DNA of 64,000 bases from sequence record LC727698.1; one strand, 5' to 3'. The position numbers and the translations under genes are program-made. Positions 2,234 through 57,342 of this stretch are shown here, piece by piece; position 1 is the stretch's first letter, and the number at the start of each line of letters is the position of its first letter. The notes beneath the pieces were generated by a model, which saw only the letters and a program-made list of their open reading frames with translations, ran no database searches and had not been told where the DNA came from.

Positions 2234-2264
2234 CAAGCCGTGCTTTTGCGCGGCTTTTTATTTT
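2234..2264 (+). terminator. Rho-independent terminator
   Basis: AAGCCG...CGGCTT stem followed by a T-run. Confidence 0.55.
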
Positions 2265-2275
2265 GTAGGACAATT

Positions 2276-4687
2276 ATGTACATCGATATTTTCGAAGATA
2301 AGAAAAATGAAATACTTCTAGTTGCAGAACGATCTGCAGGCAAACGAATATACAAACAATACCCTATAGATCATACATATTACATATTAGATGCAACCGG
2401 ACCGTATAAAGATATATTCGGTAATAATGCTAAAGCTATTAAGCCATCTAGCATAAATGAAAAAATGACTCAAATGAAAATGCTAGATTTTTCGCAAACG
2501 TGCGAAATAGACGTCAGGCCAGAATTTAGATGCCTGGAAGTAAACTATAAGAATGCACCTATGCCAGATTTGCATGTTGCATTCTTCGATATCGAGACCG
2601 CGTTTGATCAAAAACGCGGTTATGCCGACCCAGCTGATCCTTTTAATCCCATTATATCAATATCTGTATATTTGCAATGGATGCAGCAAATGGTTTGCTT
2701 AGCATTAGCACCAGAGACTATATTGCCAGAAGATGCACAACGCATAGCATCAGAAGTAGGCGAAACAATTATATGTAAAAATGAAAAAGAAATGCTAAGT
2801 ATGTTTATTGACTTAGTAGAAGATGCAGACATTTTATCAGGTTGGAACTCAGAACGTTTCGATATTCCTTATACTTTTAACAGAATTGTAAAATTATTAG
2901 GTAAGAATGAACTAAGAAAATTATGCCTTTGGAATCTTATGCCCAAGAAGCGCAATATTGAACAAGAAGGCGGCAGTAGTTTTGTTACATTCGAAACATT
3001 TGGTAGAATACATTTAGATTATCTCCAATTGTATAAAAAATATAATTACGAAGAACGTCATAGTTACTCGTTAGATTCTATTTCGGAAATCGAACTAGGT
3101 GAACGAAAAGTTCCATACAACGGAACGTTAGACAAACTTTATAAATATGATTTTAAAAAGTTTTTAGAATATAACATTCAAGATACTCGACTCCTAGATA
3201 AGTTAGATAGAAAATTAAAATATATAGATCTAGCTTCCACTATTGCACATAGTAATTGCATTCCTATCCCTACTGTTATGGGTGCAGTAGCTACAACCGA
3301 ACAAGCAATTATAATCGAAGCACATAATAACGGCATGGTAGTGCCATCTAGGCAACGTTTTAAAAACAATGATACACTTAAAGCTGCGGGCGGTTGGGTA
3401 GCATATCCTAAAGTAGGACTGCATAGAGATATTGGCTCCAGTGACTTAAATTCTCTGTATCCTTCTGTGTTAAGGGCACTAAACATGAGCCCAGAAACTA
3501 TTATCGGACAAGTTCGATTAACGCTTACTAACCCTGCAATCGAAGAATGGTGTGCAAAAGGCGGAACAAAACATACATTTGCTGCATGGTGGAACGATAG
3601 GTTTACCACTTTAGAAATGGAATATGTGTTAAACAAAGACAGGGGTACTATATTAACGTTAGATATGGCAGACGGGCGCTCGTTTGAACTGTCAGGTGCC
3701 GAAATATACGAATTAGTATTCAACAGTGGTCAGAATTGGCATATCAGTGCTAACGGAACTATATTCACACAAGACAGAGCAGGTGTAATTCCGTTACTAC
3801 TTACAAGATGGTATGCAGAACGTAAAGGGATGCAGAAAATTGCATCAGATTATAATTCTTTAGATAAAGAACACCATAGCGACAAAACTGTATTTTTAGA
3901 AGATAAATCAGTATTAGATGGAATATGCGTAGGCGAAGTTGAATTAGCAGACCATTATAATATTAATGATGTATATGTTGCAGCTACATTAAAAAATCTT
4001 GTCGAATCAAAAAATTGGCAAGAAGTAGCAATATATATGAAAAAGTATGGACTAGAAGTGTCGTCTGACAATTCAATTGTTATGTCAGATTCCCATATGC
4101 AAAACGAATATTACGAATATTGGGATAAAGCCCAGTTAGTTCGTAAAATTGGATTAAACAGCTTATATGGCGGACTACTTAACGAACATTCTAGATTCTA
4201 CGATAAAAGACTAGGACAGAGTACTACACTTACTGGGCGCTGTATCACTAGACATATGGCTTCTAAAACAAACGAAATGTTTACTGGCATTTACGATCAT
4301 GAAGGCGATTGTGTAATTTATGGCGATACAGATAGTGTAGATGGATCAACTATCCTAAATACTTCTCTAGGTAAAATAACTATAGAAGAATTGTTTAATG
4401 TGTCTGACAAGCATGTAGTTCATGCAGAAAAAGAATTTGCTTCGAATGAAGATGTTATGGTAATGTCGTGGGACAATTCTGCAAAACAACCATATATGGG
4501 GCATATAAACTATGTGTACCGCCACGAAGTAGAAAAAGAGCTATTCGAAATAGAAGACAACAACGGAAATAAAGTTATAGTAACCGAAGATCATTCTATT
4601 ATGGTTATACGTAACGCAGAACTTCTAGAGGTTAAACCCACAGATTTAACAGATAGTGATATAATATTATCTATTGTATATGAATAA
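2276..4687 (+). CDS. Family B DNA polymerase, N-terminal part, fused to the N-half of a split intein
   Basis: ATG at 2276 after AGGA. Exonuclease motifs FDIET, GWNSERFD, YNIQD; polymerase motifs DLNSLYPS, KIGLNSLYG, YGDTD; intein N-terminus follows. Confidence 0.95.
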   Translation: MYIDIFEDKKNEILLVAERSAGKRIYKQYPIDHTYYILDATGPYKDIFGNNAKAIKPSSINEKMTQMKMLDFSQTCEIDVRPEFRCLEVNYKNAPMPDLHVAFFDIETAFDQKRGYADPADPFNPIISISVYLQWMQQMVCLALAPETILPEDAQRIASEVGETIICKNEKEMLSMFIDLVEDADILSGWNSERFDIPYTFNRIVKLLGKNELRKLCLWNLMPKKRNIEQEGGSSFVTFETFGRIHLDYLQLYKKYNYEERHSYSLDSISEIELGERKVPYNGTLDKLYKYDFKKFLEYNIQDTRLLDKLDRKLKYIDLASTIAHSNCIPIPTVMGAVATTEQAIIIEAHNNGMVVPSRQRFKNNDTLKAAGGWVAYPKVGLHRDIGSSDLNSLYPSVLRALNMSPETIIGQVRLTLTNPAIEEWCAKGGTKHTFAAWWNDRFTTLEMEYVLNKDRGTILTLDMADGRSFELSGAEIYELVFNSGQNWHISANGTIFTQDRAGVIPLLLTRWYAERKGMQKIASDYNSLDKEHHSDKTVFLEDKSVLDGICVGEVELADHYNINDVYVAATLKNLVESKNWQEVAIYMKKYGLEVSSDNSIVMSDSHMQNEYYEYWDKAQLVRKIGLNSLYGGLLNEHSRFYDKRLGQSTTLTGRCITRHMASKTNEMFTGIYDHEGDCVIYGDTDSVDGSTILNTSLGKITIEELFNVSDKHVVHAEKEFASNEDVMVMSWDNSAKQPYMGHINYVYRHEVEKELFEIEDNNGNKVIVTEDHSIMVIRNAELLEVKPTDLTDSDIILSIVYE
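4334..4684 (+). mobile_element. Split intein N-fragment (117 aa, Ser1, no Cys)
   Basis: Begins SVDGSTIL right after YGDTD; block B-like VTEDHS; ends at a stop codon. Confidence 0.9.
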
Positions 4688-6362
4688 AGAATATTATCAG
4701 TCATACGCAAAAGAATTAAAAAAGAATAATAAGAAAGAATACAATCGTATTCTTTCTTTGTATGAGCCTGTATTCGATAAATGGGTTGCATTTAAGTATT
4801 ATATAAAAGGAATATCGCCGCCTGTATGTAAAGAATGTGGTAATAGAATAACTGTTTCGGCAAAACAAGCAGAATATCACACAGAATGCAAATATAATAA
4901 ACACAAGTATTCATTTGATAAATTTATAAAATGCATAGATGATGACCAATACATATATTGTGTGTGGAATGGATATATTTCAACATCTGACAATATAACA
5001 TACAGATGCACTAAACACGGCATAATTGTTCAAAAACTTAGTTCTAGACTAAAAGGTCACAAATGCCAAAAATGTTCAGCTGAGCGTAAAGTAAGTCTAG
5101 ATAACTTTAATAACTGGAAAACGCAGTGTTCTAAAATACATAATAATTTTTATGATTATTCTGTATCTACTGATTTTACATTCTTAACAAAAGATGTATC
5201 TATTAAATGTCCAATACATGGAATATTTAAACAAAAAGCAAACGTCCATCAATCAGGTCACGGTTGTAAACAATGCTCGTTCGAAGCCATCGGTCATAGA
5301 TTATCATATGACACAGATTCTTTTATAGAAAGAAGTAACAATGTTCATAATAATTTTTATGACTATACCAAAACTATATACACTAACATTAGAGATAAAG
5401 TTATTATAACATGTCCGATACACGGCGACTTTAATCAGATAGCATATTATCATACTGCCGGACACGGTTGTCAGAAATGCGATTTAGATAAAGTAGCAGA
5501 AACTACCTATAGATCTAAGGCAGAAATAGAAATATTTGATTTAGTTAAATCTTATTGCTCAGATACAATTCATTCATACAATAAATTCGGGTTCGAATTA
5601 GACATATATGTTCCTAGTAAAAATCTTGCAATAGAATATAATGGACTTTATTGGCATTCTTCTAAACATATAGAAACTGATCAAAAGTATAAAACATACC
5701 ATCTTGATAAAACCACTACATGCGAACAAAATAATATCCAATTATTACACATTTTTGACAACGAATGGCATACTAAAAAAGATATATGGATCTCGGTAAT
5801 AAAAAATAAACTAGGTTTATCTAATAAAATATATGCAAGAAAAACAGAAATTAAAGAAGTTAATTTCGATGATGCAAAACAATTTGCCGAAACGAATCAT
5901 TTGCAAGGTCATGCACAATTTCGGCATGCATACGGATTGTATTATTCGGATCAATTAGTTTCTTTATTAACAATTGCAAAGCCCAGGTTTAATAAAAATG
6001 CAAACTGGGAAATAGTAAGATTTTGTAACCTAAATAACACAAGTGTAATAGGTGGGTTTTCTAAATTATTAAAGGTAGTTTCTTGTAATTTTACAGGCAA
6101 GATAGTATCATATGCAAATAGGCGCTGGTCTGCTGGAAACGTTTATGAAAAAAACGGATTTGCTAAAACTTCAGTAATAGCTCCTGGATTTTATTATACT
6201 GACTTCAAAGATACATATAATAGATTATCTTTCTCTAAAGACAAGGCAAAAGTTAAATTAAAAAATTATAATAATTCAGTTAGTGTAGTAGAAAATATTT
6301 ACGCAAACGGATATGGCAGGATTTGGGATTCAGGAAATATTGTTTATACAAAGGATTTATAA
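4680..6362 (+). CDS. Free-standing homing endonuclease, Vsr-like/EDxHD PD-(D/E)xK family, with zinc-binding repeats
   Basis: ATG at 4680 overlaps the polB-N stop. Repeated CPIHGxFxQ...H..GHGCxxC motifs; SKAEIEI...ELDIYVP..LAIEYNGLYWHS nuclease core; sits between the two intein halves. Confidence 0.85.
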   Translation: MNKEYYQSYAKELKKNNKKEYNRILSLYEPVFDKWVAFKYYIKGISPPVCKECGNRITVSAKQAEYHTECKYNKHKYSFDKFIKCIDDDQYIYCVWNGYISTSDNITYRCTKHGIIVQKLSSRLKGHKCQKCSAERKVSLDNFNNWKTQCSKIHNNFYDYSVSTDFTFLTKDVSIKCPIHGIFKQKANVHQSGHGCKQCSFEAIGHRLSYDTDSFIERSNNVHNNFYDYTKTIYTNIRDKVIITCPIHGDFNQIAYYHTAGHGCQKCDLDKVAETTYRSKAEIEIFDLVKSYCSDTIHSYNKFGFELDIYVPSKNLAIEYNGLYWHSSKHIETDQKYKTYHLDKTTTCEQNNIQLLHIFDNEWHTKKDIWISVIKNKLGLSNKIYARKTEIKEVNFDDAKQFAETNHLQGHAQFRHAYGLYYSDQLVSLLTIAKPRFNKNANWEIVRFCNLNNTSVIGGFSKLLKVVSCNFTGKIVSYANRRWSAGNVYEKNGFAKTSVIAPGFYYTDFKDTYNRLSFSKDKAKVKLKNYNNSVSVVENIYANGYGRIWDSGNIVYTKDL

Positions 6363-6617
6363 ATGCATAATCTAACAAAACACCTTTTAGGTGTATTTTC
6401 TGCAAAAACAGAAGACGAAGAATATAACAGTGCAAAAAGAGCGTTAGAAGAATTAAACAAAAATATAAAAGAAAGAGATCCTAATAAATTTAATGTGTCT
6501 TTAGGAAAGGTATCTAAAGTAACTAATTTAGGAAAAAAGAAACAATATGTATACGATATAGGGATGAAAAATCCCGATAATCCGTATTTCTTTGGAAATA
6601 ATATATTAGTTCACAAT
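6363..6617 (+). mobile_element. Split intein C-fragment (85 aa, ends His-Asn, +1 residue Ser)
   Basis: Blocks F/G YVYDI...ILVHN; TCT (Ser) at 6618. Confidence 0.9.
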
Positions 6618-7502
6618 TCTTGCTATTTTACTGCATGGCCTGCAGTAAAAGACCTAGTAGAATCTGGCGAAATGGAATGGGATAAAGATACTGTCATTAA
6701 ATTATACGACAATGTTTCGTCACAAGTAAGTGATACATTTCCAGAATTTTTAAAACAAACATTTAATGTTCCATATAAAAACTCAGAAGGTGTTATTAAG
6801 TCAGGTAGGGAAATTGTAGCTACTTCTGGTCTTTTTATCAAAAAGAAACGTTATGCTGCTATGATGTATGATAAAGAAGGTACTAGATACGACGACGAAA
6901 ACAGCCCAGGAAAAGTAAAAGCAATGGGTTTAGACTTACGTCGGTCAGATACGCCTAAATTTGTCCAAACATTCCTTATGGAAATTCTAGTTATGGTGCT
7001 AACACATAAAACAGAAGATGAAGTAATAGAATATATTCGAGAATTTAAAAAAGAATTTAATAAAATGAAACCGTGGGAAAAGGGAATGCCAAAAGGCGTC
7101 AACGGTATCAGTACATATGAAGATAAATTAGAAGAACATATGAATAAAAAGTTAGCAGGAAGAGAGTCTAGAATCACTGTCCCCGGTCACGTGTCTGCTG
7201 CGATGAACTGGAATAAACTAAAGCTTATCAATAAAGACCTACATACTCCTAAAATCTCAGATGGTCAAAAATGTGTTGTTTGTTATTTAAAAGAAACCGC
7301 AGACAATCATTTTACTAGTATAGCATATCCTGTAGATGAATTGCACTTACCAGAATGGTTTACGTCTTTGCCATTCGATGAAGATTTAATGAGAGAAAAA
7401 GTAGTAGATAACAAAGTTAAGAACCTTTTAGGTATTCTAAAATGGGATTTTAGTAAAACAGAAGAAGCTGCTGCACACTTCGATTCGCTGTTTGGTTGGT
7501 AA
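6363..7502 (+). CDS. Split intein C-fragment fused to the C-terminal part of family B DNA polymerase
   Basis: VYDIGM...FFGNNILVHN/SCYF splice junction, then PolB motifs KKRYA and KVKAMGLDLRRSD. Confidence 0.93.
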   Translation: MHNLTKHLLGVFSAKTEDEEYNSAKRALEELNKNIKERDPNKFNVSLGKVSKVTNLGKKKQYVYDIGMKNPDNPYFFGNNILVHNSCYFTAWPAVKDLVESGEMEWDKDTVIKLYDNVSSQVSDTFPEFLKQTFNVPYKNSEGVIKSGREIVATSGLFIKKKRYAAMMYDKEGTRYDDENSPGKVKAMGLDLRRSDTPKFVQTFLMEILVMVLTHKTEDEVIEYIREFKKEFNKMKPWEKGMPKGVNGISTYEDKLEEHMNKKLAGRESRITVPGHVSAAMNWNKLKLINKDLHTPKISDGQKCVVCYLKETADNHFTSIAYPVDELHLPEWFTSLPFDEDLMREKVVDNKVKNLLGILKWDFSKTEEAAAHFDSLFGW

Positions 7503-7582: not shown

Positions 7583-8329
7583 ATGATTGTAGACAATTTA
7601 AAGGACGTAGTTCGTAACACTCACGGTTTAGGTTTTATAGATACTGTCAAAATTATCGGTTCTGTAAATGAAACTAAATTAGAAGCTATGTCAACTAATA
7701 AAACTGTAGTTATGTACGGTTCTTTAAAAAAATCCATTCCGGGGTTAGACGATACTGTAGGTTTAAGTAGAATGTCTGTACTGAGCGGTATGTTAAATTT
7801 CCCACCATATTCGGGAGATGATGCTGAAGTTTCTATTAAGAAACAAGAACGTAACGGTGAAGAAATCCCTGCAGAAATTGTATTTTCTTCTTCGACGGGT
7901 CACAAATCGTCGTACCGGTTTATGGCACGAGATACAGTAGATGAAGTGCTAAAAGTTCCGCCGTTTAGGGGAGTTGTGTGGGATATAGTTATTCAACCTA
8001 CTAAGCAAGCGATGAAAGATCTTCAATATTTTAGTGCTGTATTGGGTTCTTATGAATCTAACTTTTTAGTTAAAGTAACAGACGGTGTTTTAGAATTCCA
8101 CATAGGTACTGGTGCTACTAGTGACCGTACCGTTGTACCATTTGCAAAAGATGTCAAGAGCACATTACGCAATAACTGGTCCTGGCCATTACCGGAAGTG
8201 TTAGCAATTCTAAAAAACGCAGATAGTGGCAAATGTACTATGTCTATTTCTAGTCAGGGTGCATTGATGATTGAACTCGACACTGGGCTAATAGAAGTTC
8301 AATATATTCTTCCTGCAAAAAGTGCATAA
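7583..8329 (+). CDS. Probable DNA polymerase sliding clamp (T4 gp45-like)
   Basis: 248 aa, adjacent to polB; YRF motif and C-terminal YILP resemble phage clamps. Confidence 0.6.
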   Translation: MIVDNLKDVVRNTHGLGFIDTVKIIGSVNETKLEAMSTNKTVVMYGSLKKSIPGLDDTVGLSRMSVLSGMLNFPPYSGDDAEVSIKKQERNGEEIPAEIVFSSSTGHKSSYRFMARDTVDEVLKVPPFRGVVWDIVIQPTKQAMKDLQYFSAVLGSYESNFLVKVTDGVLEFHIGTGATSDRTVVPFAKDVKSTLRNNWSWPLPEVLAILKNADSGKCTMSISSQGALMIELDTGLIEVQYILPAKSA

Positions 8330-8332: not shown

Positions 8333-8593
8333 ATGATCTTACCTGCTCGTAAATTAGTTAAATTGCAATACTATATTGTACAGGAATCTTACAATTCTAT
8401 AGGTAGACCAATAACTACAGTTACTCTTGTATACAGAAAATATATATTTTTTACAAAGAAAGAAAAAATTATATTCGAGCGTATTAAGAAAACAGACAAT
8501 TTGTATTATAAACAAGAATCCGAAAAAGAGTTGTGTGAACAACTAAGTGTATGGGCAAAAAGAACATTAAAAATATATGATATAGGGCAATAA
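8333..8593 (+). CDS. Hypothetical protein
   Basis: ORF packed after the clamp gene and followed by a hairpin. Confidence 0.55.
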   Translation: MILPARKLVKLQYYIVQESYNSIGRPITTVTLVYRKYIFFTKKEKIIFERIKKTDNLYYKQESEKELCEQLSVWAKRTLKIYDIGQ

Positions 8594-8610
8594 TTGCCCT
8601 ATATTTTTCA
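8584..8610 (+). terminator. Rho-independent terminator
   Basis: ATAGGGCAA-taa-TTGCCCTAT followed by T-rich tail. Confidence 0.6.
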
Positions 8611-8665: not shown

Positions 8666-10288
8666 ATGAAAAATTTATCAAACAGTCAAAAAGATTATGC
8701 GATCTATTTGCCTGCAATTAGTGGGTTTTACACAAAACAATTAGACAGTTCCATTAACGATCCGTCTACAAGAAAAATACCTAGCTTTCCTAATGGATAT
8801 AATACTCTTAATTTTTTAGATCCATCTAGCGATACATTCTTTTACGGGTATGGGTTATATTCTGCAGGCCATGCAGAACTGTCTTTATCTAGAACTGATG
8901 CAAAAGAATGGATGATCCAAGCCAGGGACAAAACACAAACAACAGTTATTGCAGATTCGGGTGGTTTCCAGGTAGCTACCGGTGTAATTAAATTAAACTG
9001 GGATGATTTTAAAGGAGCTAGCGGAGATAAAATAAGAAATGAAATTTTAAAATGGTGTGAACATACCGCTGACTGGTCAATGACACTAGATGTTCCTGCG
9101 TTTGCTGCTACTCCTCCGTACAGCTCAAAAACCGGTCTTAATAAATTTGAAGATACATTAGATTATTCTCTTCATAATTTACATTATTACATGAAGAACA
9201 GAACTCCAGGCGCAACTAAATTCCTTAGTGTATTATCGGGATCGGACGTAGATACATCTAAGATTTGGTACGACAACGTAAAAGCATTTAGTGACCCCGC
9301 TAAAGTAGTAGAAATGGGATATCCAGCTAGTCATACACTCGAAGGATATGCATTTGCTGGTATAAACATGAGAAATATGTATTGTGCTCTTTCTCGATTC
9401 TTAGATCTAATAGATGATAATATTATTTCAGATAAAAACTGGATACACTTTCTCGGACTAGGCAGGACCGATTGGGCTTGTTTCTTAACATCTATTCAAC
9501 GAAATATAAGAAAACATTATAATCCCAATATTAACATAAGTTTTGACGCAGCTTCTCCGTTTGTTTCTGTGGCATACGGTCTTGCATATAACTATAATTA
9601 TTTTAATCCCAAACGGTGGGGATATAATATGGATTCTGCCCCAGACAGTAGAGAGTTTAGTGATAAAGATATTCCTATGCCGTTTATGAGTCCTATTATG
9701 GAAAAATTATCATTAAAAGACATATGTCCATATCACAATGGTTATGGTATAATAAATGGTGTTAAAAATGCAAACTTTACAAAAGAAGATGTAGAAACTG
9801 CTCTTAAAGAAGGAAAAGATGCAGAATACGTGCCGCCTAGCGCAAATAAAAATGGTAAAGTAGGTAAAACCAGTTGGGATTCACTTAGTTACTTATTAAT
9901 AATGAATCATAATGTTTACAATCATATAGCTGCAATCCAAGAATCTAATAGATTAGTCGATATAGAACGGTTGCGAGTTAAAGTAGATTACCGAGATTGG
10001 ACTAGAGATAAAAAGAAAGGTACTATAGAAGTAAGTAATCACGTCCCTAGTTCGATTTTATATTTTGACCATTTCGTAGAAGTATTGCTAGATCCGAGTA
10101 CTCCTAATAAGCGACAATTACTAGAAGATTATAGACCTATGCTAGACAGCATTAGTTTCGGTAATTATAACTCAAACTCATTTAATAGTCTTTTTGATGT
10201 AGATGCTACTGCAATTGAAGATGAAAATAAGTTTGCAGACATAAACGACGAAAAACTAACTGAATTAGAACAAGGATTAGACAATTAA
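8666..10288 (+). CDS. tRNA-guanine transglycosylase (TGT)/DpdA-like base-exchange enzyme
   Basis: IADSGGFQV, MTLDVP, GYAFAG, IHFLGLG, SFDAASPF and HNVY correspond in order to TGT catalytic motifs; no obvious CxCxxC zinc site. Confidence 0.8.
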   Translation: MKNLSNSQKDYAIYLPAISGFYTKQLDSSINDPSTRKIPSFPNGYNTLNFLDPSSDTFFYGYGLYSAGHAELSLSRTDAKEWMIQARDKTQTTVIADSGGFQVATGVIKLNWDDFKGASGDKIRNEILKWCEHTADWSMTLDVPAFAATPPYSSKTGLNKFEDTLDYSLHNLHYYMKNRTPGATKFLSVLSGSDVDTSKIWYDNVKAFSDPAKVVEMGYPASHTLEGYAFAGINMRNMYCALSRFLDLIDDNIISDKNWIHFLGLGRTDWACFLTSIQRNIRKHYNPNINISFDAASPFVSVAYGLAYNYNYFNPKRWGYNMDSAPDSREFSDKDIPMPFMSPIMEKLSLKDICPYHNGYGIINGVKNANFTKEDVETALKEGKDAEYVPPSANKNGKVGKTSWDSLSYLLIMNHNVYNHIAAIQESNRLVDIERLRVKVDYRDWTRDKKKGTIEVSNHVPSSILYFDHFVEVLLDPSTPNKRQLLEDYRPMLDSISFGNYNSNSFNSLFDVDATAIEDENKFADINDEKLTELEQGLDN

Positions 10289-11349
10289 TGAAAGTTATAA
10301 TAATCCCCATCGAATCAATAGAAACTCGGTATACGTCAGAATGGAATATGTTTCTTAAACCGCAACTAGAAAAGTATATAAACGAATCCGGTCTCGATGC
10401 AGAAATAGTTCAAATCGATGTAGATTATGTTGACGAAGGCACCTCTGCGGGCGCCTTCCTTAACTTTGCAAATACAAACATATTCAAAAGCAATCAATTC
10501 ATTAAGTTAGCAAGTATAATAGAAACTTTAAACGATAACGATGTTGTTCTCTATACAGACGCATGGAATCCCACAGTAGTTCAACTAAATTACATGCGAT
10601 CGTTAATGAATAAAAAATTTAAAATAATGGGGTTGTGGCACGCCGGTTCGTATGATCCGCATGATTTTTTAGGAAGGCACTTTGATAAAAATTGGTCATA
10701 TGAATTTGAAAGATCATTATATAATATATATGATGTAAATTTCTATGCAACTAATTTTAGTAAAGATCTCATGATAGATAACCTTTTTGGTAAAACAGCT
10801 AACGTAAACAGACACGATATAGTAGGTTGGCCAATGGAATATTTAGTTGACCAACTTACGCCTTCTCCTAACAAGACAGATACTATATTATTTCCTCATC
10901 GAATTTCTCCTGAAAAACAACCAAATATATTCAAAAAATTAAGATCATTACTTCCTAACTACGAGTTTGTTTTTGCACAAGAAACTAAATTATCAAAGGC
11001 AGAATATCATACACTTCTTAAACGTTCTAAAATTGTCTTTTCGGCTTCGTTGCAGGAAACATTGGGTATAGGTTTCTACGAAGGTGCATTAGTCGGTGCA
11101 ATTCCGTTATTGCCGGACCGATTGTCTTATAAAGAAATGACAGAAAATGTAAAAAACAGAAATTTGTATGTATATCCAAATGAATGGACTATTTCAGAAA
11201 ATCTGGCAGACCTAAAAAATTTAGTTACCCTAATAGATTATACTATGCGTAATTATAATTTTATAGTAGAAGAAATGAAACTTAATTTACTGCCCGAATT
11301 AAACAAATATTATAACGGAACAGAGTTGTATAAAAGAATTTTAAAATAA
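10288..11349 (+). CDS. GT-B fold glycosyltransferase (GT4-like)
   Basis: ILFPHRISPEKQP and SLQETLGIGFYEGALVGAIPLLPD (E-x7-E); start overlaps the TGT-like stop (TAATG). Confidence 0.8.
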   Translation: MKVIIIPIESIETRYTSEWNMFLKPQLEKYINESGLDAEIVQIDVDYVDEGTSAGAFLNFANTNIFKSNQFIKLASIIETLNDNDVVLYTDAWNPTVVQLNYMRSLMNKKFKIMGLWHAGSYDPHDFLGRHFDKNWSYEFERSLYNIYDVNFYATNFSKDLMIDNLFGKTANVNRHDIVGWPMEYLVDQLTPSPNKTDTILFPHRISPEKQPNIFKKLRSLLPNYEFVFAQETKLSKAEYHTLLKRSKIVFSASLQETLGIGFYEGALVGAIPLLPDRLSYKEMTENVKNRNLYVYPNEWTISENLADLKNLVTLIDYTMRNYNFIVEEMKLNLLPELNKYYNGTELYKRILK

Positions 11350-11433
11350 TTTCCATTTAATATTCTGCATACAATTTACATTTTAATACGAAAACATTAT
11401 AATATTACAAAATTAAAAATAAGGATTATTTTT

Positions 11434-11811
11434 ATGGGAATTAAACGATGGATCGAAGTTCCTTTTCAAAAAGAAGGAATTCACATGTACCCGGGTGCAG
11501 ATAGTAACCCTGCACTAGCTACAAATGATTGGAAAGATGTATCTTTTTTAGGATATCCTCATTTTCATTATTTTTATTTTACTGTTAAAATTGAAGTTTT
11601 TCATAATGAACGAGATATCGAATTTATTCAATTTAGACGGTTCTTAGAAAGACTGTATAGTGAATCTCTGCTAAAACTAGATGGTAAATCTTGTGAAACA
11701 ATGGCAGAAGAATTATATGAACAAATTAACATTGTATATCCTAACAGGGACGTTGTGATTACAGTGGCAGAAGACAATATTAATAAAGCTGTTTTAGAAT
11801 TTTTCAAATAA
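11434..11811 (+). CDS. QueD-like (PTPS-fold) protein
   Basis: 125 aa; GIH...HFH His cluster, KSCETMAEELY and VAED pattern; QueE and TGT-like genes nearby. Confidence 0.65.
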   Translation: MGIKRWIEVPFQKEGIHMYPGADSNPALATNDWKDVSFLGYPHFHYFYFTVKIEVFHNERDIEFIQFRRFLERLYSESLLKLDGKSCETMAEELYEQINIVYPNRDVVITVAEDNINKAVLEFFK

Positions 11812-11825
11812 GCAAGGATGCTATT

Positions 11826-12086
11826 ATGTATAATAAACAACTGTCAGGAATATATACTACTACGACGATAAACTCTATGCCAGCTAGCTACTCCGGATTA
11901 ACGGATCTAGGCATATATGATACAGAACTTTCGGTATTGAGGAAAAAGATAGAACAGATAGAAAAAATGTTGTGCATGTTAGAAGTAGATAAATTACTTT
12001 CAGAAAAATATCCTGCATTAAAATCTGCATATGACGAATACGAAGTCATATTATCTGTCATAAACGGTACGGAGAAAAAAGAGTAA
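11826..12086 (+). CDS. Hypothetical protein
   Basis: ORF in operon, AGGA RBS. Confidence 0.6.
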   Translation: MYNKQLSGIYTTTTINSMPASYSGLTDLGIYDTELSVLRKKIEQIEKMLCMLEVDKLLSEKYPALKSAYDEYEVILSVINGTEKKE

Positions 12087-12605
12087 ATGGCAATGCGTGT
12101 CATTATTACTGGTTGTAACGGTTATGTTGGTAAAACAGTAAGCAAATACTACTATACATTAGGATATAATGTCGTGGGATTTGATTTAATTAATTCAAAA
12201 AATAGTTACATAACTAATTTTTATCAAACTAGCTATGCATCTAGTATTGCAGAAGATATAATACTCGAATCTGATGCAGACACGCTTATTCATTGTGCTG
12301 TAGAAAAAAGCAATACATTACAACAACATTTCTACCACAATAGTATTCAATTTATAAACTTATTATCAGTATTAAAAAATACTTCTATAAAAGAAATAAT
12401 AGTATTTAGAAATAAAAGTGCAGAAAATAATGATGCCCTTTTAAAACTCTCTAATAACACTAATAAAGACTATTTAGAAGAATTTTCTAAATCGACAGGA
12501 ATTAGTTCAAAAATATATAATTTGTTAGATAAGAATAATGAACAACACATTATAGAATTAGTACAACCGTATTTAGAATTAAGTAAACACTTTTATATAT
12601 TTTAA
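12087..12605 (+). CDS. NAD-dependent epimerase/dehydratase-like protein, short or degenerate
   Basis: N-terminal VIITGCNGYVG Rossmann motif and IHCA; only 172 aa, no clear YxxxK. Confidence 0.65.
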   Translation: MAMRVIITGCNGYVGKTVSKYYYTLGYNVVGFDLINSKNSYITNFYQTSYASSIAEDIILESDADTLIHCAVEKSNTLQQHFYHNSIQFINLLSVLKNTSIKEIIVFRNKSAENNDALLKLSNNTNKDYLEEFSKSTGISSKIYNLLDKNNEQHIIELVQPYLELSKHFYIF

Positions 12606-12616
12606 GGAGATATTAT

Positions 12617-13051
12617 ATGTACGATAAAAATTTTGTATCAATGGATCAAATGCCAGTTATTGTCAGTGACTTGGTTAGTGATATAGACGAAGCAGGAATT
12701 TCTCCTAAAGTTATTATTGCTATTAGCAAAGGTGGACTAATTCCTGCCACTATGATTAGCTATTATTATGATTGCCCTATTGTAACATACGATCCGGTAG
12801 AAGATTGTTTTAGTACAAATAATGACATAAGTTCTGAATGCATTATCGTAGATGATGTTATTGACACCGGTAATACTGTAAATTCTGTTATTTCTTTGTT
12901 AGAAGACGAATTCTTTTTTACGAAAGAAGACATTAGTAGAATTAGAGTAGCATCAATATTTGCAACAAGAAATAATACAATTGTAGATTTTTATCATGAT
13001 GAAATAAGTTACCATGATTCGGTAAGTTTTGAATTTAAACAATTTATTTAA
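12617..13051 (+). CDS. Type I purine phosphoribosyltransferase-like protein
   Basis: IAISKGGLIPA and PRPP-binding IIVDDVIDTGNT. Confidence 0.85.
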   Translation: MYDKNFVSMDQMPVIVSDLVSDIDEAGISPKVIIAISKGGLIPATMISYYYDCPIVTYDPVEDCFSTNNDISSECIIVDDVIDTGNTVNSVISLLEDEFFFTKEDISRIRVASIFATRNNTIVDFYHDEISYHDSVSFEFKQFI

Positions 13052-13121
13052 TATAAAGTTATTCTTTACTTTTAGTATGATTGCGTTTATAATGTATATT
13101 ATAAAATAAAGCGGATTATGT

Positions 13122-13994
13122 ATGAAACACAGATATACTGAAAAGTTTTTCTCAGTCCAGGGAGAAAGCCTACATACCGGAAAATTATGCACTTGGCTTA
13201 GATTTTTCGGATGTTCGTTGCAATGTAGGGGCTTTGGACAAAAAGAACCTGGAAATCCCGAAACATGGGTAGAACAACGACCGGATTTAATAGATGTAAC
13301 AAACATTACAGATTATAAACAATTACCGACTCCTAAGTATGGATGTGATTCAGACTATTCTGTATTTGCTAAATTTAAACATCTTGCAACAGAAGTCGAT
13401 CCTGTTGTAGTTGCAAATGAAATAAAACAATTAATTCCTAGTAAAACATTTGGTAAAAAAATAGGTCATGTATTTACGGGCGGAGAACCGTTAGTAAACC
13501 AAGAATCTATAGTAGATATAGTAAATTATTGGATAGATACTAATGATTATCCTGCATGGATAGGAATAGAAACAAATACAACTAGACCGTTAGAAAAATG
13601 CTTAATCGATTTAGTTAACAGATGCAAATCGATCGGTGTGCAATTTTATTTTTCTATGTCACCTAAACTACTTCATGTAGCAGGTGAACAACCCAAACGA
13701 GCTATCCATATAAATTTAATGAAGGAATATATAGATATTGCACCGGATAGCTATCTAAAATTTGTAGTAAATGAAGATCAGCGATCGTGGGATCAAGCAA
13801 AAAGTATAGTAGACACATTAAATGCTGATGGGTATTTACCGGATGTGTGGGTTATGCCAGTCGGAGGCATTTATTCCCAACAAACAGACCCTGTAATTGG
13901 AAGACTTGCAGATAAAGCTATCTTCGAATACGAATGGAATGTTAGTTTGCGTGTTCACGTATTAACCTGGGGTGACGATCAACTAGGTAGGTAA
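13122..13994 (+). CDS. queE: 7-carboxy-7-deazaguanine synthase (radical SAM)
   Basis: EKFFSVQGE, GCSLQC...GCDS (third Cys after an insertion), FTGGEP, SMSPKL, LRVH. Confidence 0.85.
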   Translation: MKHRYTEKFFSVQGESLHTGKLCTWLRFFGCSLQCRGFGQKEPGNPETWVEQRPDLIDVTNITDYKQLPTPKYGCDSDYSVFAKFKHLATEVDPVVVANEIKQLIPSKTFGKKIGHVFTGGEPLVNQESIVDIVNYWIDTNDYPAWIGIETNTTRPLEKCLIDLVNRCKSIGVQFYFSMSPKLLHVAGEQPKRAIHINLMKEYIDIAPDSYLKFVVNEDQRSWDQAKSIVDTLNADGYLPDVWVMPVGGIYSQQTDPVIGRLADKAIFEYEWNVSLRVHVLTWGDDQLGR

Positions 13995-53211: not shown

Positions 53212-53288
53212 CCCTCGGTAGCTCAGTTGGTTAGAGCGCGCGACTCATAATCGCTAGGTCACTGGTTCGAATCCAGTTCGAGGGACCA
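53212..53288 (+). tRNA. tRNA(CAU), Ile2-like
   Basis: Cloverleaf; anticodon arm GCGA-CTCATAA-TCGCT as in bacterial tRNA-Ile2; CCA encoded. Confidence 0.85.
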
Positions 53289-53310
53289 ATTTTAAGATGT
53301 TGTGCTTTTA

Positions 53311-53395
53311 GCCCGAGTGGTGAAATTGGTAGACACAGGAGACTTAAAATCTCCCGCTTCACAGCGTACCGGTTCGAGTCCGGTCTCGGGTACCA
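53311..53395 (+). tRNA. tRNA-Leu(UAA)
   Basis: GGAGA-CTTAAAA-TCTCC; long variable arm; CCA. Confidence 0.95.
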
Positions 53396-53445
53396 AACAA
53401 AAGATATAAATACTTAACAAGATAGGAAACTATTCTAAAATTAAA

Positions 53446-53521
53446 TGGCTAGTAGCTCAGTTGGTAGAGCAAATGACTGTTAATCATTGGGTCGTAGGTT
53501 CGAGTCCTACCTAGCCAGCCA
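53446..53521 (+). tRNA. tRNA-Asn(GUU)
   Basis: AATGA-CTGTTAA-TCATT; G73, CCA. Confidence 0.95.
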
Positions 53522-53547
53522 ATTACACTTTGTTGTATATTCAATAT

Positions 53548-53623
<76 letters not shown>

Positions 53624-53692
53624 ATTTTAAATAACAGTTGTATCTAAAGAGATACAATAGTCTAAATAAAATATTCATATAATGTTTCAAAC

Positions 53693-53769
53693 GGGACTTT
53701 AGCTCAGTTGGTTAGAGCGCGCGACTCATAATCGCTAGGTCACTGGTTCGAATCCAGTAAGTCCCACCA
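53693..53769 (+). tRNA. tRNA(CAU), Ile2-like, second copy
   Basis: Body identical to 53212..53288; acceptor stem GGGACTT/AAGTCCC. Confidence 0.85.
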
Positions 53770-53819
53770 ATTTTTATATACAAATCAAACTATACTTAAA
53801 CTATATAATGAATGAATAT

Positions 53820-53904
53820 GCCCGGTTGGTGAAATCGGTAGACACAGGAGACTTAAAATCTCCCGACGAAAGTCGTGCCAGTTCGAGTCTGGCACCGGGC
53901 ACCA
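53820..53904 (+). tRNA. tRNA-Leu(UAA), second copy
   Basis: Same anticodon arm as 53311; different variable and T arms; CCA. Confidence 0.95.
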
Positions 53905-54768
53905 AACTCCTACAAAAGGAACATATTATAGTATGTTCCTTTTTTATTATGATATTTTTATTATGAATGAAATAATGCATATATCTGCCAACACATACGT
54001 AATAGAATATCGCGTATTAAACAAGTTAGTAGTCACTATAAAAAATAATAGATCTTTTACATTATGGGTACATTTTGATATCGGTACATTTTCTATGGCA
54101 TGGAAATACAATGCAATATAGAATTAAAAAATGAAATACATTATTAATTTACAATACTCAACAGAAGTAATATATATGCCGTGTTTCAACATAATATCGT
54201 TATGCGATAATAGATCTGTTACTATCCTTTCTATTACTATGATATTTAAGATAAGATACTATTTGCATCCGATGTTCCGTTATATTCTATAATACATAAT
54301 ATTTTTATTGTAACAAATACCAGAAGTTCTTAGATAATATATAGCAATTCTGTTTATTATCGATATTGCGGTATACTTAGTATTTCTTATTAACCGTATT
54401 ACATAGAATAAAGAATGGAAAAAATTTTAACTATTTCACATAAAACATTAATATGTGAACTGTCGTTATTAAAATGGTCGAAATCCATAGTTTGTGCATA
54501 TTCTGGCGAAATAATATGGTATGTTCGGTTGCATAAGAAATGTTATGTAGTACAGCTAAGATGATAATGAACTGTATTTTTTCCTATTCGTACTATTTAG
54601 AACGCATCGTATGTCATGCAAAAATCTACAAAGGGTTTGTAGTCAGTAAAAATACTTTTTGTGAGAAATCCGTAATAGCTTTATACTTAATAAATAGTGG
54701 TAGTTATTTTCATAAATGTTACGTCGATCATTACTTAATTGTATAGATATATATTTTAATAAAAATAG

Positions 54769-54797
54769 TTGACCAAACGCACAAAACAGTATATAAT
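54769..54797 (+). promoter_or_regulatory. Sigma70-like promoter for tRNA-Arg
   Basis: TTGACC-N17-TATAAT. Confidence 0.75.
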
Positions 54798-54848
54798 GTT
54801 ACGCATACAAAGCATTATTACAAAGCTATCATTAGTTGCACAAGATAT

Positions 54849-54925
54849 GCGCTCGTAGCTCAGCTGGATAGAGCATCCGCCTTCTAAGCGGATGGTCGGG
54901 GGTTCGAATCCCTCCGGGCGCGCCA
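54849..54925 (+). tRNA. tRNA-Arg(UCU)
   Basis: TCCGC-CTTCTAA-GCGGA; CCA. Confidence 0.95.
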
Positions 54926-54946
54926 ATTTTTAAAGAGTGTTGTGTT

Positions 54947-55788
54947 ATGCAAACAATAAGATTTGACATAAGACTTCTCGATTATAGTAAGAAACAAGGC
55001 TTTTGCTGTATAGGTAAAGATATATTCGAAGTGTGCAGAAAAACTCGGATCAGTCCAGGACAGTTAAACTTACGAAAAGATTATATAGGACGAGTATTAG
55101 TATGGATTGATTCGAACTATAATCTGCACAATACCTGTTTAGTAGGCTGGACTCGGTATAAAAAATTTATTCATAATTAATAATATGAATAGATGCAAAG
55201 AACATCTACAATACAGAACAATCAAAAAGCATACATTAACTTGTAGGAAATGCAAAGAGTTATCGTTACAAATAAAATTATTTTGGCTTCAACAACAAGC
55301 ATTCAGTATTAGAACTGATACTAGCGGAATATACATATTCGATAATAAATATAATTCTATTTACGTATACTCTGTGGCTTGGTATAATACAGAATTATAC
55401 GGTAAAGGGACAATAATTTTAGAATAAACATGTATATATAAGAGTACCTCAATTAATGAATAATTATTCTAATGATACAGATATTCTAAAATGGATAAAG
55501 CGTAACAATAGAAAAAATGCACGTCTAATTTCATATATAGACGGAATATATAATATTGTTTATTTCGATGGCGGAAAAGCAAGAGTTGGCATAGTAAAAG
55601 ACAATATGCACTGCAGATACGGAATACATAGTCGTGGATCTATGTATTCGAAAGATATAATGAGCCTGTGGCAATCTAGTACAGGTTCGTGTTCGCCTGA
55701 TGATGTAAAGATTATGCAAGATTATCTAGACGATAAATGTATGCTTCCGGAATTTGATTTTTCTCAGATTAAAAATTTAAAATGGTAA
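54947..55788 (+). other. Three small hypothetical ORFs between tRNA genes (54947, 55185, 55456)
   Basis: Packed ORFs of 77-110 aa. Confidence 0.5.
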
Positions 55789-55811
55789 ATAATATAACAA
55801 TATAGTTTTAT

Positions 55812-55888
55812 CGCAGGGTATGCAAGAGGTCTAAGCAGAAAGGCTCATAACCTTTTTATCGTGGGTTCGAATCCCACCCCTGCAACCA
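55812..55888 (+). tRNA. tRNA-Met(CAU), initiator-like
   Basis: C1:A72 mismatch; anticodon arm AAAGG-CTCATAA-CCTTT; CCA. Confidence 0.85.
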
Positions 55889-55897
55889 GTTTTATAT

Positions 55898-55974
55898 CTA
55901 GGCATAGCTCAAGTAGGTAGAGCACTTGCTTTGGGAGCAAGAGGTTGGGGATTCGAGGTCTCCTGCCTAGACCA
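55898..55974 (+). tRNA. tRNA-Pro(UGG)
   Basis: CTTGC-TTTGGGA-GCAAG; C1-G72, A73, CCA. Confidence 0.9.
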
Positions 55975-55983
55975 ATTTACTAT

Positions 55984-56056
55984 GCAGTCCTAGCTCAATT
56001 GGTAGAGCACTGTCCTTCCAAGTCAGATGTTACGGGTTCGAGTCCCGTGGGCTGCT
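55984..56056 (+). tRNA. tRNA-Gly(UCC), CCA not encoded
   Basis: CTGTC-CTTCCAA-GTCAG (one T-T mismatch); U73 followed by CAA. Confidence 0.8.
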
Positions 56057-56813
56057 CAATATTCTAATATAATTGATTAGTATATCTAATCGATGGTTAG
56101 TGTAGTGGATGCATATGGAAATATAGAAGTATTAGTTATGCCATCTAACATAACGGTACTAGAATTACAGGCATATACAACAGAGCTATTGTATGTAAGA
56201 AAATCTCATTGTTTATGTTTATACCTTCCTGATATAGGAAATTATGCTTTATGGTTTTTTTAGACAGATAGGATAAAAATATAAATTGATATTATTCTGT
56301 TTAAGGAACTAGAATTAAATGGCAGGTTGCTTATTTAGACTAGATTTGTCTATTTTTCGTGAAAATGTATATAGTATTTCTAGTTTGTCTTATACAAAAT
56401 CTATATGCATTTCAATAAAAACTAAACCGACAAGCAATAGAAAACAATTAGAAATATATGTTGTAGATAAAACAACTGATTTTTTAGTTGCATGCAAGTA
56501 TTTTTAGCTTATCTATTTTGACTTGCCTTTAAAATAAATAACCATTATATATTTGATATAACAACTATTCTAAATAGAAATAAAACCATAAATACACATA
56601 ATAACGGTGTGGATTTATGGAAAACATATTTAGGATATCTATTAATGCTAACGAAGGTATTATACGAATATCCCCTACTTACTTTTTTAATGGTGTTTTT
56701 TATTCAAAGCATTTGAATATTTTTATAATAGATCCCGACGGATATCTAATAAGAAAAATATATACTTGTAGTACATTCTTATGATGATTTCTTTTAAATA
56801 TACAAAATAACAT

Positions 56814-56842
56814 TTGACAAAAGTATAATTATTTCGTATAAT
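56814..56842 (+). promoter_or_regulatory. Consensus sigma70 promoter
   Basis: TTGACA-N17-TATAAT. Confidence 0.85.
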
Positions 56843-56873
56843 AAGTGTATAAAATAACAAAAGAGAATTTTAA

Positions 56874-57233: not shown

Positions 57234-57247
57234 AATTAACTAGTTTT

Positions 57248-57337: not shown

Positions 57338-57342
57338 AATAT

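Follow-up and report, generated by a model that had tools for sequence, protein, structure and literature searches.

We analysed a 64,000-nucleotide stretch of sequence record LC727698.1 (hereafter the window) from Pseudomonas phage 30-3, a PA5oct-like jumbo phage (Wroclawvirus, Arenbergviridae), and in it a gene cluster at 8666-13994, which corresponds to 194666-199994 of the record. The cluster combines a predicted DpdA-like transglycosylase, of the tRNA-guanine transglycosylase (TGT) superfamily, with a glycosyltransferase (GT) and with genes related to the synthesis of 7-deazaguanines, and it very probably constitutes a 7-deazaguanine DNA-modification module. The window is AT-rich (~31% GC), and the cluster is 98.5-99.3% identical to its counterparts in ten other PA5oct-like jumbo phage records. 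Seven open reading frames (ORFs), all on the plus strand and with intergenic gaps of 0-84 nt, occupy the interval (gp numbers are those of PA5oct):

8666..10288, plus strand: DpdA-like transglycosylase, 540 aa (gp168), a TGT-superfamily TIM barrel by fold and motifs
10288..11349, plus strand: GT4-type (GT-B, retaining) glycosyltransferase, 353 aa (gp167), its start overlapping the stop of the DpdA-like gene
11434..11811, plus strand: DpdL homologue, 125 aa (gp166), by homology to phiST CGPG_00067 and ACP17 gp125
11826..12086, plus strand: small ORF, 86 aa (gp165), accompanying the epimerase gene
12087..12605, plus strand: truncated GalE remnant, 172 aa (gp164), the N-terminal Rossmann half only
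12617..13051, plus strand: type I phosphoribosyltransferase (PRTase), 144 aa (gp163), PF00156 at 43.6 bits against a cut-off of 26.3 (2.6e-11)
13122..13994, plus strand: QueE, 7-carboxy-7-deazaguanine (CDG) synthase (radical S-adenosylmethionine enzyme), 290 aa (gp162), phrog_2076 at 6.6e-49 over the full length

The genes that a first-pass annotation had picked out here from the letters of the window are all present, on the plus strand, where it placed them, and its PRTase and QueE calls agree with the family matches listed above. It had also pointed to an overlap between the TGT/DpdA-like and GT4-like genes, and a check of the sequence shows that the stop codon of the former and the start codon of the latter share one base (TAATG at 10286-10290, within AAT TAATG AAA at 10283-10293). 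Its proposal that the GT is coupled to the transglycosylase agrees with this 1-nt overlap and with a near-obligate co-occurrence of the two genes in divergent phages and in bacterial islands, and its view of the locus as a 7-deazaguanine cluster around a TGT/DpdA-fold enzyme is upheld.

We scanned IMG/VR with a profile of the transglycosylase family, which returned at least 569 loci, and analysed 80 of these, 55 of which were informative for gene content in having at least 7 kb downstream. Among these 55 a GT was found in 54, DpdL in 54, FolE in 43, QueE in 40, full-length GalE in 37 and the PRTase in 30, whereas neither QueC nor QueF occurred in any. The module genes of the IMG/VR loci share one strand, usually in the order DpdA-like ... 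DpdL-GT-GalE-PRTase-FolE-QueE, with DpdL 5' of the GT in 48 of 60 loci, and GT homologues with examined neighbourhoods (on phage contigs) occupy the same module. Because the gene set recurs in 54 of the 55 informative related contigs, the arrangement is far beyond chance. All 80 loci also carry a homologue of a sliding-clamp-like gene directly 5' of the transglycosylase gene. In the window, two features precede the cluster:

7583..8329, plus strand: sliding-clamp-like gene, annotated as PCNA in PP408249, the immediate and conserved upstream neighbour of the transglycosylase
8579..8605, plus strand: terminator-like hairpin with a 12-bp stem and a T run, just 5' of the module

A Pfam search with the clamp-like gene gave no match. 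The hairpin suggests that a new transcription unit begins at 8666, and it is plausible that the seven-gene array forms a single unit, because no comparable plus-strand terminator lies inside it; between 8666 and 14000 on that strand the only further terminator-like site is a weak 7-bp hairpin at 8860-8878. Matches to sigma-70-type promoters were no more frequent than in shuffled sequence.

The 540-aa transglycosylase has no match in Pfam, PHROG, NCBIfam, PADLOC or PDB sequences, and neither of two HMMER profiles of its family, A1 and the broader A3, found a TGT among all PDB sequences. Since sequence profiles found no TGT, the protein is tied to TGT solely by fold comparison and by motif-level hhalign. 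AlphaFold, given 35 homologues, produced a confident model (predicted local distance difference test, pLDDT, 87.3; predicted template modelling score, pTM, 0.86). Its five best PDB matches in Foldseek are all TGT or QTRT structures (Z. mobilis TGT, QTRT2 and QTRT1/2; E 3.6e-5 to 9.8e-4, probability 1.0), with template modelling (TM) scores to the target of ~0.5, and generic TIM barrels come next at E >0.02. A structure search of BFVD matched first the homologue of Vibrio phage 2.275.O and also found proteins named tRNA-guanine transglycosylase from Achromobacter phage Motura, Dinoroseobacter R5C and mycobacteriophages, the Vibrio phage nt-1 protein R9TGF0 and, weakly (Foldseek E 5e-3), the 259-aa phiST protein M4SLA5, whose length agrees with that of CGPG_00065, the DpdA3 of Cui et al. 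Four TGT-like motifs are present, DSGGFQ (D97), TLDVP (D142), HFLGLG and SFDAAS (D294), the catalytic aspartates being assigned from the motifs without superposition. Among 23 divergent sequences, down to 19% identity, D97, S98, G99, G100, Q102, D142, H261, L263, G264 and D294 are invariant, and we take these to be the TGT active-site residues. By hhalign, DSGGFQ, HFLGIG and SFDAAS align with DSGGLQ, HLLGVG and SYDSTT of the ACP17 DpdA (82% probability), and GYAFAG and HFLG are placed on GYAVGG and YLMG of E. coli TGT. The earlier TGT/DpdA-like call thus stands on fold and on invariant catalytic motifs.

By BLAST, the relatives of the 540-aa protein include Sinorhizobium phage Phosso, Vibrio phage 2.275.O and several Alphaproteobacteria (E 1e-25 to 1e-69). 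Similarity to the ACP17 DpdA (gp123) is marginal (E ~0.004), that to phiST CGPG_00065 is slighter still (BLASTP E 2.3-4.7; hhalign probability 31%), and E. coli TGT shows essentially no BLAST sequence relatedness. The DpdA3 subfamily (phiST, CP220) was considered as a home for gp168 and set aside, there being no detectable sequence relatedness, as was the DpdA of the bacterial Dpd system, for which PADLOC gave no relevant match with the window, Shimia, ACP17, phiST or Vibrio proteins. On sequence and model comparison we file the protein in the TGT/DpdA superfamily as a putative separate, long subfamily, belonging neither to DpdA3 nor to bacterial DpdA; we found no name for it. The family is large, with 1605 matches among 8000 scored candidates in a 90%-clustered database, and 1023 clusters at E <=1e-3 (294 at <=1e-30) among 1.84 billion 50%-identity representatives; none of the 120 family matches listed carries a Pfam annotation. 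With regard to the structural zinc site of TGT (CxCxxC...H), C354 is kept by at least 90% of 35 close members, all of which share H415 and H420; these residues are absent from the conserved lists of the broader alignment, and a CxCxxC pattern is not evident in the sequence. Relative to the family consensus, the PA5oct-lineage protein appears to carry ~30 extra residues (about residues 355-395; 9730-9850), for which the model confidently shows two short strands followed by a helix and another strand.

What gp168 acts on is suggested by its surroundings and by the behaviour of PA5oct. The DNA of this phage is restriction-resistant, and a preprint infers a modified G in GA and/or GG contexts and shows that PA5oct is restricted by nucleases sensing modified G (PMC12191111). 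It notes QueE (gp162) and a 6-pyruvoyl-tetrahydropterin synthase (PTPS; gp230), with the chemistry not determined, and in the passages retrieved makes no mention of gp166-168 (PMC12191111); an omics paper on PA5oct mentions neither deazaguanine, queuosine nor restriction. Position in a replisome module and the restriction resistance of PA5oct together give indirect support to an exchange of guanine for a 7-deazaguanine in DNA by gp168. A tRNA target, raised as an alternative in the first-pass annotation, would place the deazaguanine at G34 of host or phage tRNAs, for example the tRNA-Asn(GTT) at 53446-53521, where it would then be glycosylated as in galactosyl- or mannosyl-queuosine. Such modified queuosines occur in vertebrate tRNA (PMC4425180), tRNA is the classical substrate of TGT-fold enzymes, the 12 tRNAs encoded by the phage include tRNA-Asn(GTT), and bacterial cassettes related to the cluster, described below, contain a YhhQ-like gene. 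We nevertheless consider this target very improbable: in 80/80 relatives the transglycosylase gene keeps a constant place in the replication module, with the sliding clamp on one side and an RNase H / 5'-3' exonuclease on the other, it is PA5oct virion DNA itself that behaves as G-modified in the preprint, and the nearest viral structural relatives are phage DpdA-type enzymes. GalE genes carried by relatives, together with a complete FolE-QueD-QueE pathway, moreover suggest a bulk, stoichiometric demand.

The GT was modelled with a pLDDT of 91.8 and adopts the two-Rossmann GT-B fold. Foldseek returned 83 PDB matches at E <=1e-3, led by BshA, MshA, PglA, glycogen synthase and sucrose-phosphate synthase (E 1e-9 to 1e-8; TM 0.57-0.66 for the top matches), and none of the T4 DNA glucosyltransferases is among the best 50 structural matches listed. 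In 28 sequences, down to 20% identity, R205, E209, K210 and E265 are invariant and E257 nearly so, with E-x7-E spacing; over this E-x7-E/donor stretch WlaC aligns to the GT profile as a weak match (E 9.6e-4), and Pfam Glycos_transf_1 scores 19.9 bits, below its cut-off of 26.4. The conservation of donor-binding residues and of E-x7-E over these 28 sequences argues for a working enzyme.

The third gene of the cluster had been described as QueD-like. Its product does belong to a family described as QueD-related, though not as a canonical QueD: homology to phiST and ACP17 proteins identifies it as DpdL. It matches phiST CGPG_00067 (tblastn 4e-8, BLASTP 3.7e-14, 33% identity) and ACP17 gp125 (BLASTP 9e-33, 47% identity), and in the Cellulophaga phages phiST, phi13:1 and phi19:2 the tblastn matches fall exactly at CGPG_00067, beside a MazG-like gene; about ten further phage lineages have homologues by tblastn. 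For DpdL, a QueD paralogue, a decarboxylation of CDG to 7-deazaguanine has been proposed; its signature is LxxxHRHxF in place of the CxxxHGH of QueD, and its link to the T-fold/PTPS family (PF01242) comes from HHpred on the phiST protein (Cui et al. 2023, PMC10516641). The signature residues L39, H43, H45 and F47 are invariant in 14/14 aligned sequences. Pfam has no match for gp166, a DpdL profile found nothing relevant in PDB, and hhalign against four phage QueDs gave 14.7% probability. Most likely, gp166 would decarboxylate CDG to 7-deazaguanine.

In QueE the three cysteines of the C-x3-C-x39-C pattern (C31, C35 and C75) are invariant in 31/31 relatives, and in the TGGEP stretch T119, G120 and G121 are found in 31/31 and E122 and P123 in 30/31; NCBIfam QueE models match the N-terminus of gp162 under their cut-offs (41.6 vs 260). 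That the window contains neither QueC nor FolE, as noted in the first pass, was borne out. A search of the rest of the genome, which that annotation had called for, found FolE and left QueC unmatched. PA5oct gp231 is GTP cyclohydrolase I (FolE; PF01227, 1.5e-59), and gp230 and gp226 are PTPS/QueD proteins (2e-30 and 2e-21); FolE and the two QueD genes stand next to those for thymidylate synthase and ribonucleotide reductase, ~54 kb upstream of the cluster. The module genes are single-copy across the genome in a six-frame search with hidden Markov models (HMMs) and phmmer, and one-sequence HMM and phmmer searches of the whole genome with single phage sequences as probes gave no match for QueC, QueF or Gat. 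A PP-loop protein at 63011-63622, the only one of the genome, was considered as QueC and rejected, being of the TilS type (PF01171) and not PF06508. It is a stand-alone PP-loop ATPase of 203 aa (PF01171 1.7e-36), annotated as tRNA(Ile)-lysidine synthetase and comprising the N-terminal domain only. Since FolE, QueD and QueE are present and QueC probes were unmatched, the phage is, as judged by its gene content, self-sufficient for CDG but not for preQ0. The first-pass annotation had proposed CDG or a derivative as the inserted base; because its QueD-like gene is a DpdL homologue, the derivative 7-deazaguanine appears more likely than CDG itself.

The gene read as epimerase-like in the first pass proved homologous to GalE, but gp164 is a degenerate N-terminal remnant. 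PF01370 is matched at positions 1-112 alone, and the galE model TIGR01179 gives 20.3 bits against a cut-off of 262.3, covering model positions 1-118. The counterpart in a 62%-identical relative (L004) has 312 aa and, at 273.8 bits, passes the GalE equivalog cut-off; a Y-x3-K motif is not evident in gp164 where the L004 GalE has YGNTK. Forty-two related loci encode a full-length GalE of 323-357 aa. In the nearest relative (L130) the remnant is likewise short (162 aa) and 33% identical, against 80% for the DpdA-like protein and 65% for the GT, and gp164 is thus under relaxed constraint, an intact yet fast-evolving ORF. A homologue of gp165 (40% identity over 48 aa) lies directly 5' of the full-length epimerase gene in another relative (L005); gp165 itself has no family match in Pfam or PHROG. 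The GalE equivalog of L004 and the full-length GalE genes in 37 of the 55 contigs argue that modules of this kind consume a UDP-hexose.

The PRTase gp163 has a visible phosphoribosyl pyrophosphate loop, IIVDDVIDTGNT, and is nearest to xanthine/guanine PRTases (best NCBIfam model PRK09177, 2.8e-9, 36.7 bits, below the cut-off of 138). Such an enzyme could make a CDG or 7-deazaguanine ribonucleotide, with the GT decorating the free base or nucleoside, for incorporation by the phage polymerase or as a soluble metabolite, for example an anti-host or anti-defence compound, in place of base exchange. Both halves of this route have precedents, TubE acting on CDG and HuiG on a preQ0 derivative; a PRTase nearest to 6-oxopurine enzymes is found in 30/55 modules, and the GT has an acidic acceptor domain and is best matched in structure by enzymes with small-molecule acceptors. 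Within the module, however, nothing is more constant than the transglycosylase, with intact catalytic aspartates, in its replisome block (80/80); the bacterial cassettes contain a GT and DpdA but no PRTase, and the PRTase could simply salvage released guanine. The restriction pattern described in the PA5oct preprint, with G-sites partly cut and partly uncut, also fits motif-selective exchange better. A nucleotide-pool or small-molecule route therefore appears nearly as improbable as a tRNA target.

Among cultured phages, the GT lies within 1.2-3 kb of DpdL in the PA5oct-like phages, Phosso, ACP17, Xanthomonas phages X1 and BUDD and Burkholderia phage BCSR5. In ACP17 it stands directly between DpdA and DpdL, though this DpdA is of another subfamily; in Phosso it overlaps DpdL, 170 kb from the DpdA-like gene. 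A GT beside the DpdA-like gene had been expected in Phosso and in Vibrio phage 2.275.O, and the neighbours there proved unrelated. The Vibrio phage (L003, 7905-14931) has the most distant cultured homologue of the transglycosylase, beside QueF, a YhhQ-type transporter, QueC, an amidotransferase and FolE, and neither a GT homologue (tblastn E <=1e-5) nor a DpdL homologue (E <=0.01) was found in it. Because this locus encodes QueF, QueC and an amidotransferase, and a GT and DpdL were not found, the long DpdA subfamily may additionally serve a preQ1 or G+-type pathway. The PhiXhv/Ep group of Xanthomonas and Erwinia phages has a GT match at 24% identity; tblastn at E <=0.01 found no DpdL homologue there.

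The GT profile was further used to scan 185,579 species genomes, which returned 29 loci, several of them phage-like contigs in metagenome-assembled genomes. A DpdA-like gene was present in 29/29 of these cellular GT loci where room allowed. We analysed 19 bacterial loci, mostly alphaproteobacterial (Sulfitobacter, Shimia, Roseobacter, Devosia, Pelagibacterium, Methylobacterium, Azospirillum and others). The GT and DpdA-like genes adjoin or lie within ~1.5 kb of each other in 19/19, and 18/19 contain a membrane protein resembling the queuosine-precursor transporter family YhhQ (PF02592 at 24-26 bits, just under the cut-off, in four of five proteins tested, the fifth being weaker). FolE was not detected near any of the 19 loci, DpdL was near 3/19, QueE was occasional and the PRTase was missing. 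Frequent companions are a 585-aa protein without a family match, a LuxR-type response regulator and a MASE1 histidine kinase. In one annotated locus (L115, 5054-12300) the cassette stands beside an integrase and an ABC-3C defence system, and integrase-sized homologues recur in seven bacterial loci (among L099 and L105-L126). The GT and DpdA thus form a two-gene core that persists where the base is presumably imported and not made, and the cassette of YhhQ-like, GT, DpdA-like and 585-aa proteins may be an undescribed bacterial system for self-DNA modification or defence. Across phages and bacteria, comparison of the loci indicates that the GT-transglycosylase coupling is real, ancient and widespread.

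These neighbourhoods bear on two further explanations. In one, the phage DNA carries a known, plain deazaguanine, as the deoxynucleoside of 7-deazaguanine (dDG) or of CDG (dCDG), and the GT and GalE serve another acceptor (another base, a protein or an envelope glycan) from the same early or replication operon. The example of phiST, which yields dDG by DpdL and DpdA with no GT, speaks for it, as do the want of an obvious C7 glycosyl acceptor on 7-deazaguanine, the small-molecule and glycan enzymes that are nearest to the GT in structure, and the very large size of the GT family (at least 8000 matches). Yet every GT neighbourhood examined, in phage contigs, ACP17, Phosso, the Xanthomonas and Burkholderia phages and 29/29 cellular loci, has a DpdA-like gene and/or DpdL; the bacterial islands reduce to YhhQ-like, GT and DpdA genes, with no envelope or other base-modification genes conserved; and an obligate pairing over two DpdA subfamilies is hard to account for without a shared substrate. 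We regard another acceptor as unlikely. The least probable of the explanations, in our view, is that the GT is a non-catalytic or structural partner of DpdA, or that it joins the DpdL-like T-fold protein and FolE in making a pterin glycoside that has nothing to do with DNA. The ATPase DpdB assists bacterial DpdA, and cyanobacteria make pterin glycosides with FolE, a PTPS-like protein and a group-1 GT; the GT and DpdA adjoin or overlap in many lineages. Against a mere partner, the conserved donor residues and E-x7-E of the GT point to catalysis, and GalE in the module argues for a real sugar flux. The pterin glycoside was set aside on the bacterial loci, where the GT stays with DpdA and the YhhQ-like protein, FolE was not detected and DpdL is found in 3/19.

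The reading that we prefer, sugar decoration of a 7-deazaguanine that is exchanged into DNA, combines elements of several known systems. Closest in pathway logic is the dDG system of phiST (FolE-QueD-QueE-DpdL-DpdA3), which likewise has a homologous DpdL (33% identity) and a TGT-superfamily DNA transglycosylase, has no QueC and lies beside replication genes; phiST DNA contains 302,000 dDG per 10^6 nucleotides, with canonical G reported completely replaced (PMC10516641). It differs in that its DpdA3 has 259 aa against 540 aa here, the sequences not being detectably similar, in that its locus lacks the GT, GalE and PRTase, and in that all G is replaced, whereas modification in PA5oct appears to be partial and context-dependent. 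Acidovorax phage ACP17 is alike in gene order, with DpdA gp123, GT gp124, DpdL gp125 and QueE gp126 and with overlapping genes, in its GT (38% identity, 1e-59) and DpdL (47%), and in encoding FolE and QueD, with no QueC seen in the stretch examined; its gp124 carries no annotation, and its 424-aa DpdA is unlike ours in belonging to another subfamily, with a sub-threshold match to TIGR00449 (29 bits vs 47.6). The preQ0, preQ1 and G+ systems of DpdA1 and DpdA2 phages (9g, CAjan, iggy, nt-1) and the bacterial Dpd island (dpdA-K) share with the module proposed here the post-replicative, motif-limited exchange of G by a TGT-fold enzyme and a role in anti-restriction, and the 540-aa model resembles the nt-1 and Motura proteins in structure. 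These systems proceed through QueC to preQ0 and beyond, whereas QueC, QueF and Gat were not found here, and we found no literature report of a GT as part of them. The eight 7-deazaguanine DNA modifications in Cui et al. all bear small C7 substituents (PMC10516641).

Precedents for the sugar come from elsewhere. T4 DNA glucosylation, by alpha- and beta-glucosyltransferases, shares a GT-B enzyme using a UDP-hexose, a lytic phage, an accompanying base-modification pathway and an expected escape from restriction; there the base is 5-hydroxymethylcytosine (hmC), with an acceptor hydroxyl, whereas the phage GT here is acidic and may use a free base. To our knowledge, sugars in phage DNA occur on pyrimidines only (hmC, and 5-hydroxymethyluracil or thymine derivatives). 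A GT places a sugar on a 7-deazaguanine scaffold in huimycin and dapiramicin synthesis and in vertebrate glycosyl-queuosine, although these are a soluble antibiotic or a tRNA nucleoside, with the sugar on the cyclopentenediol of queuosine, and are neither in DNA nor coupled to DpdA. For huimycin, HuiG transfers from UDP-GlcNAc onto the exocyclic N2 of a preQ0 derivative (PMC7439116), and GT4-type domains (PF13439) are listed for the huimycin cluster family in a preprint (bioRxiv 10.64898/2026.04.15.718813). Tubercidin synthesis offers TubE, a PF00156 PRTase with CDG as substrate, in a FolE-QueD-QueE cluster without QueC; its decarboxylase is of the UbiD family and not DpdL, and the phage PRTase may merely salvage guanine. 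Of glycosylated deazaguanine in phage DNA we found no literature report, with journals incompletely covered, in keeping with the unfamiliarity of such a modification to the first-pass annotation. The kind of system, phage 7-deazaguanine DNA modification, is thus known; what is new here is the GT/GalE branch, which we found reported nowhere, and the long transglycosylase subfamily.

We propose the following pathway. FolE and QueD, from genes ~54 kb away, and QueE would convert GTP to CDG, and the DpdL homologue would strip its carboxyl group to give 7-deazaguanine, there being no preQ0 branch without QueC. Expressed with the replication genes, gp168 would swap guanine in new phage DNA for the deaza base, probably at preferred contexts. 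The GT4 enzyme, translationally coupled to gp168, would transfer a sugar from a UDP-hexose to the deazaguanine, either as the free base before insertion or as the base in DNA. Relatives with their own GalE would supply the 4-epimer, UDP-galactose or UDP-GalNAc, while the PA5oct lineage, with its dead GalE remnant, would draw on a host donor. The PRTase would most likely salvage the guanine released by exchange or, alternatively, turn the deaza base into a nucleotide in the manner of TubE. Because DpdL-GT adjacency is frequent, the structural neighbours of the GT are of small-molecule type and its acceptor domain is acidic, we lean towards glycosylation of the free base and not of DNA. The enlarged DpdA could then take a bulky glycosylated base; eukaryotic TGT accepts queuine. 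A sugar-decorated 7-deazaguanine would shield the genome from restriction enzymes.

For the steps of this pathway our confidence differs. Folds, motifs, gene content and co-inheritance come directly from the present analysis, and the restriction resistance of PA5oct DNA was established by others. The evidence tilts, by a small amount, towards a GT acting on deazaguanine, and the chemistry of DpdL, the DNA target, the GT acceptor, the sugar and its linkage are all inferred. To the full reading we assign a tentative probability of about 0.45: a hexosyl 7-deazaguanine (Gal/Glc or HexNAc), as a DNA base of a new chemical kind, would be common to PA5oct-like phages, hundreds of uncultured large phages of marine and fresh waters, phages of the ACP17 and Phosso types and a set of alphaproteobacterial islands, and would be made by a dedicated GT4 enzyme and the long DpdA subfamily. 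Several observations weigh against the proposed pathway. The window protein and profiles A1 and A3 match none of the curated models PF01702, TIGR00449 and TIGR00430. DpdL decarboxylation is a prediction that its discoverers did not reproduce in E. coli (PMC10516641), and residue 44, Arg in 13 of the 14 aligned DpdL sequences, is Phe in the PA5oct lineage (LGYPHFHYF). We found no published report of the PA5oct nucleoside. DpdL occurs without this GT in phiST, Aeromonas phage Ahp1 and Rhizobium phage RHph_I1_18, so that the GT would be an add-on, dispensable for deazaguanine insertion. The best structural matches of the GT are enzymes acting on small molecules, and both the protein (isoelectric point, pI, 5.6) and its acceptor domain (4.75) are acidic; T4 DNA glucosyltransferases are unlike it in this, and any action of the GT on the base may precede insertion. 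Bulk charge was tried as a test of a DNA against a small-molecule acceptor and dropped, the GT and DpdA-like proteins both being acidic, which gave no discrimination. Chemically, a retaining GT4 enzyme would find no obvious hydroxyl-type handle at C7 of 7-deazaguanine, and glycosylation at N2, the sole precedent, puts the sugar in the minor groove, an awkward place in a replicating genome. As the decarboxylated deazaguanine offers no ordinary hydroxyl, the linkage might be an unusual one (a C-, N2- or acyl-glycoside); speculatively, the major groove would better suit a C7 C-glycoside or, should DpdL act otherwise, an acyl glycoside of CDG.

Other features of the genome stand apart from this argument. 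Besides the clamp-like gene, the window holds a split family-B DNA polymerase, the RNase H / 5'-3' exonuclease and 12 tRNA genes. The polymerase is divided over two ORFs: an intein splicing domain has its N-part at the end of the first (2240-4687) and its C-part at the start of the second (6363-7502), and a homing-endonuclease-like ORF of 562 aa (DUF723, 4674-6362) separates them; the region 2240-7502 looks like a split intein plus a free-standing endonuclease. The tRNA genes form a cluster at 53212-57432 in which a Met(CAT)-Leu(TAA) pair is duplicated in tandem (53212-53395 and 53693-53904), and G34 of the tRNA-Asn(GTT) is a potential classical TGT site. About 10 kb upstream of the module and shortly before the window begins, at 212750-213322 of NC_071039.1, lies a gene for a cytidylyltransferase-like protein of 190 aa (PF01467, sub-threshold).

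If a glycosylated deazaguanine is indeed made, several consequences would follow. In E. coli, ACP17 dpdA and dpdL yielded no dDG, and the word glycosyl is absent from that paper (PMC10516641); one possible reason for the failure is a conserved neighbouring gene, the GT, that was not reported in the experiment. Base exchange and the GT could become enzyme tools for site-selective labelling of DNA, and the modification would be relevant to phage therapy, PA5oct-type phages being candidates against P. aeruginosa. The module is abundant in marine metagenomes, so that sequencing of environmental phage DNA would be affected. For the phages themselves, the modification would bear on their evasion of restriction, CRISPR and type IV/END-nucleases, and the product would open a new class of DNA bases, as no purine-type base bearing a sugar would have been found in a genome before.

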